This document shows, one piece after another, positions 53,069 to 61,817 of a stretch of DNA of 64,000 nucleotides (positions within the stretch are counted from its first letter, which is position 1; every line of letters begins with the position of its first letter). This DNA comes from Eutreptiella sp. 'Long Island Sound 2002' (Eukaryota; Protista; Euglenida), in NCBI GenBank assembly GCA_964036045.1, contig OZ038378.1:10168001-10232000 (forward strand), read 5' to 3'. Under the pieces are notes generated by a model that saw only the letters and a program-made list of their open reading frames with translations, was not told the origin of the DNA and did no database searches. The position numbers and the translations under genes are program-made.

Positions 53069-53115
53069 CTTGGCAATGCTTGGTGATAGAGGTTCGTTGG
53101 TGTGCGCATTCAAGG

Positions 53116-56100
53116 CGGTGGAGGCGGTGCGTGTCGCACAAACTCCGACCAGCAGCGGAAAGAGTTGGACGCCAAGAGAGGCTACGTCTAGCCACACGGG
53201 CAGACGACGACCCAGAGACTACCTCTTTGCAAGACGTCGTGGAGGACAACCACGACATGGAGTTAGGACAATAATGCTGACCGTTCGGGCAGTGGCATTG
53301 CTGCGTCCAAGGGCATGCACGAGTCGGTACAAACAGCCGCCGTGCTACGCGAGCCGGACACGTCCGCCGCGCGGGAAATCTTCAGGATTCCTCTTGTGCA
53401 TGCTGTGCCTTCTGCCACGGTGCTCTAACCGTAGACAATGTTGCCATACACCAGCCTTGAGTGCACGCAGGTGCCCCCCCACTGAGCTGACGAGAGAGGA
53501 CGCAATGAGAACCGCTCGGGCACGCAGCCCTGAAATGATGCTCCCCCTACCAGGGCTCTTACCACCCAGGACATGCGACTGCCGCCTGGACTGCCTATTC
53601 CTGATGACAGGTACTATGTTTTATTCCATGGGACGGTCGCACAAAAGGCGAAGGTCGGACTCCAGCAGCGAGGAGGGTGAACGCCAACATCGAAGGCGGC
53701 AGCAGCCGCAACAACACACCCACATCCATGTCCACGTCCACCAGCCCCAACAGCGACACCCAGATCGGTCGAAACGCCGCAGTGCACACCGAGAACGATG
53801 CAGGATTCAAGGCGAGACCAGACGGATGGAAAGCGCGCTGCGAGAGCTCGATGCCCAACAGGCAACTGAAGTCCAAGCAGCTCGGGAGGAGCAGCAGTCG
53901 GCCGCGCAGTACTCTGACAGGGCCCCTCTGATCCCGTTCCAGGCCAACCTGCCGAGACAAAGGCCACGGACACCCGGCTACGAGCAGGTGATGGCCCGCC
54001 CACCTCTACCCGGCTATGATGAGGTAGTGGGGATGACAGCAGACGAGGAAGAAGCAGAGCATGGCCCCAGCAGATCCGGACTCGCCAACCCGTACTCCCT
54101 GGAACAGCTGAGGGACATCTCGGCAGCGGTGCAGATGCAACCGGAACGGCCCACGGTGATCACCGATGTCCTGTACAAAACAGGCTCATACATAGCCTTG
54201 GCGCCGGAGCCCCATCTTGCGCTGCATCATCGCGATGATTGGGTCAGAGACTGGGCCACGGATGTCGGACACCAGCTGGGCTTTGACGACGCGCCAGAGC
54301 CCGACACGGTCAAGCAAGGGACCCATGCGGCGCCACGAAACTGGAGGCTGCGGCTGCGGGGAAGGAAACCCCAGGGACTTACTTTCGGCATCAGCTCCAA
54401 CGCCAAATATGGAGTGTCCCAGTACGCATGGGCCTCGGGCGCGGAATGGCTGATCAGCCGCATCCAAGCCCAAACAACAGCAGTGAGGCCGCCGTCACCG
54501 CCACCGGAGGACGAAGATGCCCAGCCGCCGGCATACGCGCCACGCCAAGAGTTTGTGGACCAGGTATGTGCAGACCTTGCTTGGCAGGTGCCTGAACGTG
54601 CGGTCCTCTCAGCAAGCGCTGATACATGCAGATACAGTACCCCCCTGCTCACACAAACTTGTCTTCTCACTTCCAGTGGCTCGACCCGGAATGGAAGCTG
54701 CAGCGAGGCTACCGAGACGGCAGATGACCGTGACCTGAAAATCCGTCAAGGCGCACCATCACCGCGGCCCATGCACACTCTCAACCCTGCCAGTGACGAG
54801 CAGGCCAGCATAGCTAAGACGGAGAGCTCCGCTAACCACCCAGCTAAGCCGTGCGCGAGATGGGAACGCCCGCCGCGTCACAGTGCCGAGAGACGGTCTG
54901 TGATGGCGAGAGCCGCCAGACTATTATGGACGAGTCGGGTAAGCCCGCCGTCCTCAGCAGCGGTGCCTGATGCACACCGCAATGCCAGTATTCACTGTCA
55001 CTGTTACCTCAGAGCTTCTCTTCCTGACCCCTCCAGCATGCCTAACCGCCTGGCCTGCCTTGTTCCTTTTCGCCCCCTGCCCCTGCTCCTGGATCAGTCA
55101 GATCAGAATCCCGCCCCAACGCAGTCGGCCCACAACTTGGCACAGCTGGCGCCACCTGACCAGTGGGCCGCGCTGCGTGTGCGCGCACACACACGCGCAC
55201 ACACGCATCCACACTGGAAGCGTGACCAGATCCTACGCTGTGGTGACGTGCACCCCAACCCAGGACCCACCTCTCTGGCACTCATCAACGTGACGGCCTT
55301 GCGAGCACACCACCATGAAGTGCTGGATTTGCAAGAGGACATCGTAGCACTCACGGAAACACGGCTCACGCAAGGGGCCCAGAATGCAATGGCCTTCATG
55401 GCAAGACAGAAGGGGTGGCAACCCTTTTGGGGAGCCCCCCTACTATCCAAGACAGGTGGCATTTGGGGAGCTGCCCCAGGAGGGGCGGCCCTTCTGGTAC
55501 GGGAAAAGTGGCCGGCAAAGCAAGCTCAGCGGGACCCGGGATGCACACTAAGTGAGGAACTGTGGAATTCAGGCAGGTGGCTGCACGTTATCGTGACCCC
55601 AGCGGATGGTAAACGCCCCCTAAACGTGATTGTGGTGTATGGGATCCCAGGAGACCACAAGCTAAATGGCAAGCTATGGGAGGCAGTGCTGACCCAAGTT
55701 GCAAAGCTGGGGAACTCCCCCTTTCTGATAGCCACGGATGCCAATGTCCAACTAGATCACTACCGCTGCATGCCCAACCTCATGATGACGGAGCTGCTGT
55801 CGGGGCGCATTGTGGATGTCGACCTCTTACATGCACGGACCACGGGACAGGACTGCCAGTGCTCGTACCACAATGGCTCCATCAAACAGAAACCAACCAG
55901 AATTGATGGTATTTTGGCAGATGCCAAGACGGCCAGTGCCATCATGAAAGTCTTGCCAACCGAAAGATGTTCCGTGCCTGGACACAAGCCGGTCACCTTC
56001 ACCTTCAATTTCAAGCAGTCTGCCCAGCGGGTTCTGAAGTTTGTGCGGTTACCACCCATGATACTAGCCCACCTGCAGAAACGCAAGCGGGACCAAATAG

Positions 56101-59100
56101 TGAAAGACGTCACCGAACCATACGTGGCGATATGGGAGAAAGTCCTAGACAATGAGGCGTCCACGGCAGATCAACTGTGGGACCTCTGGACATGGCTGGC
56201 TGAAGAAACCATGCTGGTCCTGACCATGGCACCGCCGCCAGCGGTCAGGACAGGAATATGCCAACTACCACTGGCTCCCCAAGAGTTGCCGAGAGGACGG
56301 GGAACCAAGAAGATGCTCAAGACGGTGGAGCTCACGCCGAAGCGCATGACGTCGTCAGGACTCCCGTGCACTGCACCAACCAAGGAGATGTCCGCCCTGC
56401 TGAGCGCCCTAGTGCCAGTGATGAAGTGGGCGGCAAGCAGGGAACAAGCCGTGGTCCCTGGTATGGGCCCCGTACCGCGAGAGGTCCTCAACAATTGGAA
56501 GGCGATACGCAGGAGGGCCCACCGCATTCTTCAGCTCATCTCCAAAGGGCAATGTGTAGCAGAGCACCAAGAACTACTGCGCACGGTGATGGAGGCTCCA
56601 GAAAGTGCACCCATGACCATCACCGACTTGGTCCGGCTCAGTGATAAGATTAAAATGCCGAGTAGGCGGCAACTGGCTCAAGAAGAGAAGAAGAGGCACC
56701 AAGATTGGAGAGAATGGATTGAGGAGACCTGGACCACATCACCTGGGAACGTGTACCAATGGATCAAAGAGGACAAGTACACGCCCACGGTCCTGATCCA
56801 GAAAGAGGACGGCACCTTGACTGGCAATGTGCCCGAAATGGACCTCGTGATACACCAGAAATGGGACCCGATAATGAGGCAGCACGCGGATCCGACGCTG
56901 CCGGAGCCGGAAACTGAACCCTTCTGGCGCAAGTTCGGCAAATATGTGGAGCATCACCAGATGGAATGTCAGCCCATCACCGCGGAGCGCCTCTGCCGTC
57001 AATTCAAGGACATGAAACGCGGCCGGGCCACAGGTCTAGACGGATGGACTGTTGTAGACATGCGGAACATGCCATGGCCGCTACTGCACATGCTGGCTCA
57101 GCTGTTAAACTGGGTTGAATCCCATGGCGTATGGCCTGAGCAACTTGCCACAGGGTACATTCCGCTGATCCCCAAAGGCGAGGGCAGTGAGCCGCTACAG
57201 CTCAGGCCGCTGTCGGTGCTGTCTGCGATTTATGGCGCCTAGTCCGGTATCCGACTCCGTGACTGCCTCATCTGGCAGGAGAAGTGGGTGCACCGAAATG
57301 CATTTGCCTTCAGGCCGCAGAAGAGCGCCCTGGACGCAGCAACTCTGCTGGCCGCCCTCATTGAGCGAGCACACCTACTGAAGCAGGCATTATCTGGCGC
57401 TGGCACTGACTATGTGAAGTGTTTTGATTTGATACCACAACAAATCTCCTTCCGGATGGCACGAGAGTTCGGCCTGGACCCCAAACCGCAGGCGGCATTG
57501 GAGGCCATGTATCAACAACTACACAGGGCGTTCAAAATAAACGGGGCGCTGGGCTCCTTTTTTCACGCCACGAACGGCGTACTGCAAGGGTGCGCCATGA
57601 GCGTACTCATGATCAACATGCTCACCACAGTTTGGATGCGTGCCGTGGACGAGCTGGAAGGAGCTATCTCAGTGACGGTACACAGCCTGCCGCCCATACC
57701 GCCCAAGCTGGAAGAGCCCAAGGAGCTGAGATACAGACGTAAACCCTCCCCGTCCACCGCGGTGTCCCGCTTTCGGCCATCACCGGCCCTGAGCAGGTGC
57801 GTTATGAAGACCTTCGGCTCGGGGATTGACCAGTTTGAATATTGGGAACACTCCAACCCCTGCACATGTGGCCATGGACCTCCACCTCCGCCTCAGCAAT
57901 CGCAGCCGCCACACCCCTCCTCCGCACCTGAGCCCGAACGCCATGGGCTGGTGGAAGAAGAAATGGCAGCATCGGGGGAGTCCCCGCCCCGCAGCCCAGT
58001 GAAGCTCAGGGGTGCTCAACCCCAGCCACAAGAGGCGGGCACGATCCAGGTCGGGTCCATGGGCTACGCAGATGACACGTATCCGCTGCGATCTGAGGGC
58101 CAATACATGGCGCCGGTGATGCAGCTCACTGATGAGTGGCTGGCTCTCACCCTGCAAAAAGTGAACCCCAAGAAGTCACTGTCCATACAAGTACGACAAT
58201 CCAAGGAAATTGCCCGCAAACACACGGTACTCCAAGGGATCTCACTCCCCCTCCAAGCTGAATTCCGCTCGCTGGGGGTGGGTATTCGTACCAGCCTGAC
58301 CAGGGGGACTGGCCCGCTCCTGAAAAAGAGGACATCCAAGGGGATACACCTGCTGTCCAGAGTGAGGGGTGCACAAGGGGGCTTCAGCCGGCGAACGCAC
58401 GTCATTGCCACTCTAGTACAAGCCGCAGCCCTATGGGGGACCCCGGGGGCGGAGGTATCCCGGAGGGATTTACAGAGTCTGGAGACGGCAGTGCTCCACA
58501 GTTTGTGGGGCACCTCGAGGCCAGGTAGGGCGAAGGAGATCATCTTCGTGCTGCTAGTACAGGGACACCGGGTGTCTCCTCACATGAAAACCACGTATGA
58601 CAGGGTATGTTGGCTCCTCGCGGTGGCGCGCACGCCAGGCACCCTTCAGGTTGTGGTGCAGTCGTGCATTGAAGCTCGGCAAGCACAGGTACGACCCACT
58701 ACATCAGGACCGGTTCAACGAGCCCTCCTGGAGTTGGAGAGCCTTGGCTGGAGGCAGGCGGATCATTGGTGGGTCTGGAATGTGCCCGGGGTGCCCGAAG
58801 AAATAGACATGACGCTCATAAATGAGGACAAATTCAAGCATATCCTGCGGGACTCCATCAGGCGGCGGGCCCTGCTCTCGCTGGAAGATCGTCGACCGCG
58901 ACAATTTCAAGGCATCTTAGGGGCCCTCGACAGGGAGGCATGTCAAGTCCTTCTATCAGAGGGCACAGAATTTGATAAGGCGCTGCTGCGGGGCTGGCTC
59001 ACAGGGGCGTTATGGACGGCTGCCAGGGCGCATGCGAGGGGCCTCAGGGCGACACCGCTATGCCCATACTGCTCGCGGCAACAAGAAGAAGACGACGAAC

Positions 59101-61817
59101 ACATCTTGTGGGCCTGCCCAGCCTGGGGCATACATCGATCCGGTGCCTGGCGCTCGCTTATGAGAACGGCGAGGGCCCTGGGGCTATCAGACCAGATCAG
59201 TAGTTGGCCCACGTGCTTACGGATCTGTGGCTTGATGCCGGAACACCTGTCGCACGGCATCCCCAAAGGTCAGGTGCACGACTTCATGTACGGTTTTCAT
59301 AGTATGGTGCTGCAAATTCTGCGGGCGCGGGCACACCGGGAAGATGTGCAGCTCTTTGACCAGCCTAAGACGAAACAAGGCAGAGGGTACCCATTCTGGC
59401 AGTTCATCGGGCCGCTACCGCGGCCGGAGCACAGGGAGAAGCTGCGGATTCGCCAACCCACAGCTCAAGAGTGGCGGTGGGACTCCGACTTTCGTGACGA
59501 TCTGCTACGATGGGTCAACGAGCTGGTCTGGATACCAAGGAAAGGGCAAGTCTCCTTCATGGAGCTGGCAATGGACTTTGAGTGCTTCGCGGCGCGCACC
59601 CTGCCGGCCTCACCCCTGGCTGTGTATCGGGCGACTGCCCTCCTGCTACCAGAAAGGGCAAGGGTCCTAAAGCTTGCCCTAGCGACCCTGCAAAAGCTGA
59701 GCGTGGCTGGGGCCGTGCTACCAGGTGGTGTGCTTACCAAATGCTCCTCCCTAGTCCCACTGGGGGCCCCCACAGTAGTGGGTGTGTCTGCGAGACCATA
59801 CTTCACACGGCGCCTGGACATGCTGAAACTCCTACAAAACCTGCAAGAGTACTGTGAGCTGCGCTGGACGGCTGTGCTACAGGCACCGCCCCCCTCACCG
59901 GACACGAGACGGAGAAATGCCCAGCGGGCCAAGGAACGGCGGGAAGCGATGGAGTCCAGCCCCAGCATCAGGGAGCGCATTCCCAAGCTCAAGTACACAT
60001 CGTCTCTGCTGCCTGCTATGCACACCCCCAGGCATCTCACCGGCAGAGGAGGAGGTAAGAAGAGCACCACTTTGTTTGCGGCTGACTACTTTCCAGCACA
60101 CCGCAACCCTGGAGCTCCCCCTACGCGGCCCTACCGGTTGCTCCGACCTGCCAAGCAGGCGGTCCCGCCTCCACCTGATGTAGCTGCAGTGGGCTCGAGT
60201 CCACAAGCGGCACTGCCGGCGGGGCGAGCGGCAGCGCCCAGCGATTTGTCTCAGCGCGTAGATGCGCTAACTCTCCCGGATGCACCTCTAGGATGGGCTC
60301 CGCCGTCGCCGTCGCCCCCGGTGCAGATGGAATACACCTCGGAGGAAGGGCCCTCTACCCCGGAGGTCTTCTCCTCGTCGTCCTCGTGGGAATCTGAGCC
60401 CATCAACACCGGGGGAAGCTACCGACGAGCGACAGCGGGGCCCAGAAGCGGCCCAGCGCGGTCCTCACCGCCACACGCAGTGCACCGCACACGCGCTCCC
60501 AGGGCCCGATCCGTTCACCGGTCAGGGAACCCGGCGCTGAGGAAGTCACGGCGTAGGGCACCACCTGCGCGGGTGCCCCGAGGGGTCAAAAGGCGGCAGT
60601 CGATCACAGAACAGCCGGGGAGCCCACAGCGCAAGCGACCCCAGCTACAGCAAGGGGATGCGCGGTCGCACACGGCCCTGGAGGCCCCAGACCGCCACGG
60701 GAGCCCAGCCGGAGCCCCCCTCCCCATGTCCAGGCATGCGCTCTCATACCTACAGCTCACAGGAGCTATCACTCCTGAGCGTGCGTCACGCATAGTGGTG
60801 GTAAGCACCCCAGAGGGGCAGCGCACCCCACTACCGACACGCAGCTCGGAGCAGCCTCCACACGAAAAGGGACGCGACATCCCCCCGGGGATAGCAAGGA
60901 TGTTGCAGCAGATCCGGATGCCCCCAGCAAGGCCACAACCGCTACAACCCCGAAAGGAACCACGGCCCAACGAGCGGACTTCACGCACCGCCGTCCTGCC
61001 CCCCGGCCCTCCGATGGGGTTCAACGTAACCAGCACCCCGTCTCCGCGGGTGCTGAGCAGGCCAGGGCAATTCTCGCCATCTCCGGCATGGTCGCCGGCG
61101 GTGACTTCCAGTTGGCACTCCGTGCGGCACGTGACCCCGGAGCATTGGTCGCCCGCATGCACACCAGGGGGGGGGTCTAACCGACAGCAGGATTCACCTC
61201 ACCTGCCCCCCGTCCTGCTGGCGCCCCTATTTGAGAGCGCAATGTCTACCCCGCGAAGGGACAGCACTCAGAGTGCGTCTGATGAGGACGTGCAATAGTA
61301 TGCCGTCCGGTGTTCTACCCCCCCCGATCTGCCCCCCACCCTGCTGGCGCCACTTTTTGAGAGCGTGATGTCTGCCTCACGAGCGGGCAGCACTCATCGT
61401 GAGTGCGATGAGGACATGGGTCAGTATGAAGTCCAGTACTCTACCCCACCCTCCGTGGGGGAGTGGCCCCCTAACCCCTTTACCTTTCCCTCTCTTCGCG
61501 GAGCACAGCGTCTCTGCACGGAATTGCCTGGCATGGCCCGACAGGGCCAGGGATGGGTTCGTGACCCCCATGCACGACACTCCACCATGCTGTACAGCAT
61601 GCAGGAAGGTGCTCTGTCTTCCAACAGCGCGGAGGGGCTCATGAAGCATGGACGGGCCTCACGTGAGGCAACCTAAAGGACGGAGGGGGGAGCCTCTTGT
61701 CATACAGGGCGGCAGCTCTCCAGAAACCCGCGCGATTTGCCCCTTGGGTGAGTCTGGGGGCTGGAATGGGTAGAAGCCCCATGGACTATTGCTCCTTAAT
61801 ATGATTTCCTTCCTTCC
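53116..61817 (+). mobile_element. Full-length APE-type non-LTR retrotransposon (LINE), ~8.7 kb
   Basis: 19-bp TSD TTGGTGTGCGCATTCAAGG (53097-53115 / 61818-61836). 3' (TTCC)n tail. APE, RT and CCHC motifs in one frame. Confidence 0.95.
53616..61676 (+). pseudogene. Retrotransposon polyprotein: unknown N-terminal domain, 2A-like peptide, APE endonuclease, reverse transcriptase, CCHC zinc finger, long C-tail; two in-frame TAGs
   Basis: APE: INVTAL, ALTETRL, GGAALLV, VYGIPG, ATDAN, RIDGIL, GHKPV. RT: ATGLDGW, LIPK, LRPLSVL, AFAFRP, TDYVKCFD, LQGCAMS, GYADD. Zinc finger: CPYC-x8-H-x4-C (CPYCSRQQEEDDEHILWAC). ORF-track pieces 53070-57242, 57288-61298 and 61365-61676 share one frame. The start codon is uncertain (ATG 53616 or 53628). 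Confidence 0.9.

Follow-up and report, generated by a model that had tools for sequence, protein, structure and literature searches.

In the 64-kb stretch of DNA analysed here (the window), 372 nt lying between motif B and motif C in the reverse transcriptase (RT) of a LINE are very probably ordinary RT coding sequence and represent a palm loop, at the tip of a β-hairpin, that has expanded in particular lineages. This insert, 124 codons as first bounded (57678..58049; all coordinates are on the plus strand), is fixed in a young family with at least 167 copies, whose RT has to be functional. It would begin with a Pro-rich linker, continue with a Cys/His/Trp module of ∼26 aa (a β-hairpin and then [H/C]-x3-C-x-C, possibly metal-binding) and pass through a disordered Pro/acidic linker that contains a conserved SP motif into the strand carrying YADD.

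The host element

The element is encoded by a single long ORF (53070..61298) in one frame, consisting of two open pieces (53070-57239 and 57243-61295) separated by a single in-frame TAG. Its parts follow each other as an N-terminal region, a 2A-like motif, an APE-like region, the RT, a CCHC motif and a long C-terminal tail. The second piece matches Pfam zf-RVT (E 3.7e-4) and RVT_1 (E 1.2e-9), and the latter match stops exactly at the start of the insert. The RT, with fingers, palm, thumb and the helices that follow, spans 56976..58790 according to an AlphaFold model of the intact copy L002. Its motif B (QGCAMS, 57585..57602) aligns to QGCPLS of L1 ORF2p, and motif C (YADD, TACGCAGATGAC) was read directly at 58065..58076; D458 and D459 of YADD are nearly invariant in an alignment of 56 RT rows. 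The order of the RT motifs, the YADD box and a fold like that of L1 and R2 (Pfam, PDB phmmer, Foldseek) place the element among LINEs, as does its occurrence as a dispersed multi-copy family in which several of 30 loci lose similarity upstream (5'-truncated). The TAG at 57240..57242, the sole stop of the 2.7-kaa ORF, breaks the RT of the window copy. The same codon is TGG in the other 29 of 29 fetched copies, and the window copy was thus inactivated very recently.

Immediately 5' of the APE-like region lies a 2A/StopGo-like motif, ILRCGDVHPNPGP (55230..55268), at whose place the relative P0010 carries CGDIHPHPGP. Non-LTR retrotransposons with 2A-like peptides are documented in the literature. 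A putative APE-type endonuclease-like region (55269..56012) is suggested by its alignment to P0005, P0006, P0010 and P0011, and P0010, aligned over this region, carries PF03372; the window's own N-terminal piece gave no APE Pfam match at E ≤ 0.01. In P0011, a ubiquitin-like domain (PF00240) ending in ...LRLRGG is found just 5' of the APE region, where others have the 2A-like motif, and may be an alternative route for releasing the N-terminal product. The CCHC motif, CPYC...H....C (59061..59117), stands 3' of the RT, is covered by Pfam zf-RVT and is kept in relatives. Pfam returned nothing for the ∼720 codons before the 2A-like site (53070-55229) or the ∼700 after the CCHC motif (59200-61298), and no Rfam family reached its gathering score in the whole 64-kb window. 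Among relatives, conservation of the C-terminal region reaches as far as a second Cys-rich patch, C..H....C...C....G.R.CC..GH (P0003, P0006, P0008 and P0010), which the window family seemingly lacks.

Borders and fixation of the insert

A preliminary description of this DNA had counted 160 codons between QG and YADD, and the positions of CAAGGG (QG, 57585) and YADD (58065) agree with that count. It had called the insert stop-free and Pro-rich, with the string WEHSNPCTCGH. The insert indeed has no stop in the ORF frame and four in each other frame, 25 of its 124 residues are Pro (20%), and the string is present. The letters also permit the phase-0 GT...AG bounding given there (ACG/GTACAC ... 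ATCCAG/GTC), and with it the ordinary join upon excision, where ...AISVT would meet VGSMGYADD. As a structural unit, the loop-out occupies 57696..58040, from the conserved LPP anchor to the strand leading to YADD. It begins after LPP and stops before the strand TIQVGSMGYADD, and the earlier left border is therefore about six codons early, as judged from AlphaFold strands and from short-spacing relatives, in which LPP-GDQP aligns straight onto the strand leading to YADD.

Full-length copies had been suggested as a means of deciding whether the insert is fixed or polymorphic. In the 2.28-Gb assembly to which the window belongs (2317 contigs), a 1.2-kb query across the insert has full-length matches at no fewer than 40 places, 98-99% identical and spread over many contigs. 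All 372 nt are in frame in each of the 30 fetched copies that were aligned (98-99% identical), so that the insert is fixed among 30 of 30 young copies; its frame is open in 28 of them, and 18 are stop-free across 2.1 kb. The left junction with the insert retained (30 nt, at most 3 mismatches) occurs 167 times in the genome. The idea that the insert is peculiar to one dead copy was rejected on these counts.

Two of the related proteins, P0003 and P0004, match the window's genome at 100% and hence represent sister families within it. Several related LINE families coexist there with many young open copies (L031-L050). Copies of the P0004-like family are 93-97% identical, with a further 73% sub-family, and the P0003-like lineages are 50-75% identical. 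First-look candidate counts for the sister-family queries were 8940 and 37814, so that this LINE group is far commoner than the LINE content of 1.5% reported for a published Euglena assembly.

Relatives and the distance from QG to YADD

A word search yielded 11 related proteins, and phmmer with the RT of L002 yielded 6851 at E ≤ 0.001. Most of the best 150 of these 6851 match in two stretches, interrupted at query residue ∼318, shortly ahead of the insert, whose first residue is 327. The preliminary description had considered the spacing exceptional for LINE RTs, and it is: QG and YADD are 29-33 residues apart in ∼75 homologous RTs, including P0024, a transcript of the diplonemid Flectonema neradi, and ∼41 apart in human L1 ORF2p. 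Closer relatives of the element are graded in length, with 41 residues in P0010, 53 in the P0004/P0005 family, 60 in P0008, 76 in P0006, 88 in P0013, 147 in P0125, 160 in the window family, 186 in P0007 and 199-201 in L043 and P0003. A wide spacing as a routine trait of homologous RTs, which the preliminary description had named as a refuting condition, thus describes a narrow sub-group and does not extend to the wider clade (29-33).

In the long and intermediate forms, the extra sequence always starts after the conserved LPP. P0125 is 55% identical to the window family, P0003 and P0007 are 34-37% identical, and all three carry the insert. Two lineages of the 41-201 sub-group possess a long insert (147-201), and both share the module and the SP motif. 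A tree made without the insert columns unites the whole 41-201 group in a starred clade (100*), inside which the 53-residue family and both long-insert lineages meet in a polytomy. A tree constrained to unite the insert bearers is worse by 3.2 log-likelihood units (AU p 0.233); their monophyly is not rejected, and a single origin is allowed but not demonstrated. In P0120, P0130, P0109 and P0013, Pro-rich sequence has expanded independently behind this LPP anchor, and the Cys/Trp module is absent. The loop after the LPP anchor is a recurrent expansion hotspot.

Predicted structure

The RT of L002 (710 aa) was modelled with AlphaFold2 on the 56-row alignment (pLDDT 87, pTM 0.85). The insert sits between strands 323-326 and 448-456; pLDDT drops below 50 at residues 343-361 and 393-433, and the module forms a hairpin at 368-383 (strands 368-372 and 379-383; pLDDT 66-75). 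The model of the L043 RT (pLDDT 85) resembles it, with a hairpin at 347-364 (pLDDT 55-62) and a disordered tail; the module scores a pLDDT of 55-75 across the two models, where the alignment is very shallow, and the remainder of the insert stays below 50. Both models let the insert leave the palm between two paired strands. The best Foldseek matches were human L1 ORF2p (8uw3, TMq 0.65) and R2, at E values of ∼1e-20 and down to 4e-21. A structure prediction had been proposed to see whether the insert loops out of an intact palm; in the AlphaFold models it does so, from the tip of a palm β-hairpin and with an L1-ORF2p-like RT left intact. The insert itself is predicted to be a short, modestly confident hairpin module with disordered Pro/acidic linkers.

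Two conserved islands and their constraint

The Cys/His/Trp module, CVMKTFGSGIDQFEYWEHSNPCTCGH (57798..57875), is a predicted β-hairpin followed by H..PC.C and is delimited by identity to P0125, hhalign, BLASTP and the model. A second conserved island, SPPRSPVKL (57981..58007), contains an (E/S)PxSP(V/L) motif and was located by alignment to P0125, P0003 and P0007. Between the window family and P0125, 20 of 28 module residues are identical (71%), against 28-33% in the linkers, and the SP motif (SPPxSPVK) is identical at 7 of 8 positions (88%). SPPRSPVKL is aligned with EPISPLYPR in P0003 and EPLSPVRPR in P0007. In the P0003 lineage, a module (SCYW.S.G.G.DQ.WVWRCVQPCCCWEQGW) and an EPxSP(L/V) island follow each other in the same order, and the two long lineages have in common the pattern C..G.G.DQ..W..[H/C]..PC.C. 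Comparison of the two modules gave an E value of 4.4e-4 and a probability of 33% over 26 columns with hhalign, and E 0.001 with BLASTP; together with the same anchor and the same island order, homology of the window- and P0003-lineage modules appears moderately supported.

The other long lineage has a Cys where the window family has H384, and [H/C]-x3-C-x-C is thus shared by every form that appears intact. The putative ligands are not all conserved, the first (upstream) Cys being absent from P0007 and two ligand positions being occupied by Arg in P0154, and the module is possibly metal-binding. The insert has no match to a known domain in Pfam at E ≤ 10 and no usable match in the Atlas, and a word search for further insert bearers with the insert of P0003 returned P0003 alone. 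A WW domain, suggested by the Trp/Pro pattern, was dropped on account of the unfit Trp spacing and the silence of Pfam.

Constraint was estimated between L041 and L043, which represent two diverged insert-bearing families with proteins ∼71% identical. Their synonymous sites are saturated (pS 0.62-0.75), which makes the dN/dS values (0.1-0.26) rough. Over the whole insert pN is 0.255 and pS 0.66; pN is 0.155 in the module (pS ∼0.65), 0.214 in mid-insert and 0.391 in the tail (pS 0.70), compared with 0.089 and 0.15 in the RT flanks. Within the window family, variants shared by at least two copies have synonymous to nonsynonymous ratios of 7:4 in the insert and 15:12 and 19:17 in the flanks, all small numbers. 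GC3 is 0.669 in the insert and 0.681 and 0.666 in the flanks. The pN and pS values, the shared variants and a GC3 equal to that of the flanks indicate that the insert is read as protein and is under constraint, most strongly in the module; its translation is deduced from selection and fixation. The insert-bearing sequences may all come from a single species, and the insert alignment is shallow.

Alternative readings and origin of the insert

Of the three explanations put forward in the preliminary description, an intron inside a retrotransposon is not supported. Euglenids are known for unusual introns, and a conventional GT-AG or euglenid non-conventional intron could be removed from the mRNA to leave an RT with ordinary spacing: a phase-0 GT stands at 57678 and an AG at 58048-58049, and excision yields the tidy ...AISVT-VGSMGYADD. 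A LINE copied from spliced RNA should, however, leave intron-less copies, and the junction that loss of the 372 nt would create (a 30-nt pattern) occurs 0 times in the 2.28-Gb genome, against 167 retained junctions. The GT...AG bounding is no better than chance, since 17 in-frame GT...AG pairs lie within ∼50 nt of both edges, and the sister lineages L041 and L043 have no GT at the corresponding position. The sequence further behaves as coding, with a frame open in 28 of 30 copies and with amino acids conserved in the sister families while synonymous sites are saturated, and AlphaFold pairs the flanking strands and draws the insert as a loop. An intron is therefore hardly credible here, and a tempting but wrong reading is removed in an organism known for odd introns.

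Capture from a host exon or another element by template switching, with later domestication in the RT, would account for the domain-like Cys/Trp pattern of the module, which is unlike the Pro-rich sequence around it, and LINE RTs do switch templates (PMC10830420). Yet no donor was found with Pfam (E ≤ 10), the Atlas or the word search with the P0003 insert, which recovered only itself; the GC content by codon position equals that of the flanks, and the intermediate loop lengths in relatives fit gradual growth. The captured insertion of the preliminary description thus survives only as a remote origin, and a very improbable one, while the graded loop lengths (41, 53, 60, 76, 88 and 147-201) favour in-situ expansion. 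A somewhat less improbable, though still unlikely, reading takes the insert for functionless filler, a permissive loop grown by Pro-codon slippage and tolerated, its islands constrained only for folding. Much of the insert would suit such filler: most of it is predicted to be disordered, the linkers diverge fast (28-33% identity), loop length varies continuously among relatives, the short-loop family thrives, and neither Pfam nor the Atlas has a match. Against it, pN in the module (0.155) is at the low level of the RT core and stays at 0.39 in the tail, where pS is 0.70, and two collinear islands are retained across lineages just 34-55% identical. Slippage as the origin was rejected, as Tandem Repeats Finder reported no repeats over 57500-58200.

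The remaining explanation of the preliminary description, a family-specific domain grafted into the RT, is supported by the presence of the insert in 30 of 30 copies, its sharing by the P0125, P0003 and P0007 lineages and the purifying selection in the sister families. The expanded palm loop may have arisen by stepwise growth at a permissive site, inside a set of LINEs encountered in this euglenid-type genome, from 29-33 residues to 41-60, then 76-88 and finally 147-201.

Possible function and significance

The 53-residue sister family is young and abundant, and the insert is accordingly not needed for reverse transcription itself. Since the strand leading to YADD heads for the active site, the tip of the hairpin should face away from that site, on the outside of the palm; this placement relative to the substrates is taken from polymerase topology. 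An appendage on the outside is unlikely to take part in catalysis and is likelier to be a contact surface. It could serve for docking through a possibly metal-binding knuckle and Pro-rich, acidic, SP-containing disordered segments; candidate partners are target DNA, a host protein and, from the element itself, its RNA or RNP or the N-terminal product that the 2A-like site would release. For L1, a bending of the target DNA around the positively charged back face has been proposed (PMC10830420). A role for the insert as a docking or nucleic-acid-contact appendage, and not in catalysis, is put forward tentatively. With similar reserve, the insert might be a new accessory subdomain, in which a metal-binding Cys/His/Trp knuckle and a proline-directed SP motif on a disordered tether at the outer side of the palm provide these euglenid LINEs with a function located elsewhere in other LINEs, for example docking to target DNA or host factors or regulated RNP assembly.

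Few protein cores are as conserved as RT palms, and the described repertoire of insertions (0, 2a, 3a and 6a) includes no large one between motifs B and C. That active LINE families tolerate 115-165 extra residues at this point, kept under selection, marks it as a permissive engineering site in LINE-type RTs.

Comparison with known systems

Trypanosome L1Tc/ingi and metazoan 2A-bearing APE-type LINEs carry D(V/I)xxNPGP before the enzymatic part, as the window LINE does, a likeness by motif. No report of a motif B-C insert in 2A-bearing APE-type LINEs was found in the literature, and none is known to us for L1Tc/ingi-type or metazoan 2A LINEs.

Among solved structures, human L1 ORF2p (8C8J, 8SXT and 8UW3) is the top sequence match (PDB phmmer, E 1.8e-8). 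It agrees with the window RT in the order of the motifs, the small hairpin before F/YADD and the CCHC motif after the RT, but has ∼41 residues from QG to FADD (FADD at 700-703) where the window family has 160. In contrast to the window LINE, L1 lacks a 2A peptide and does not consist of one giant ORF. The insertions described for ORF2p are motifs 0, 2a, 3a and 6a (PMC10830420), none of which lies between motif B and motif C, and the site of the insert (motif B/4 to motif C/5) corresponds to no known RT insertion motif of this set.

The insertions NTE/RT0, RT2a and RT3a of non-LTR and group II intron RTs add contacts and leave catalysis unchanged (10.1101/2021.05.13.443781). Like the insert, they are lineage-specific segments set between conserved RT blocks. 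They differ in lying between other blocks and in being short, structured and present in all non-LTR RTs, whereas the present insert lies between blocks 4 and 5, is 115-165 aa long, is mostly disordered and is confined to a few families.

The closest systems are the sister families (P0004/L031-L040, P0003/L041 and L042-L050), which are 43-45% identical to the window family over aligned columns; over the flanks alone, the short-loop families reach ∼50%. All have the same LPP anchor, CCHC motif and C-terminal region and fall in the one starred clade (100*). At the site of the insert, the P0004 family holds only LPP-GDQPVQ (spacing 53), and the P0003/L043 families hold a longer version (199-201) with CCC, additional Trp residues and a Ser-rich, acidic tail. 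One genome offers spacings of 53, 160 and 200 residues in sister families, a natural set for asking what the appendage does.
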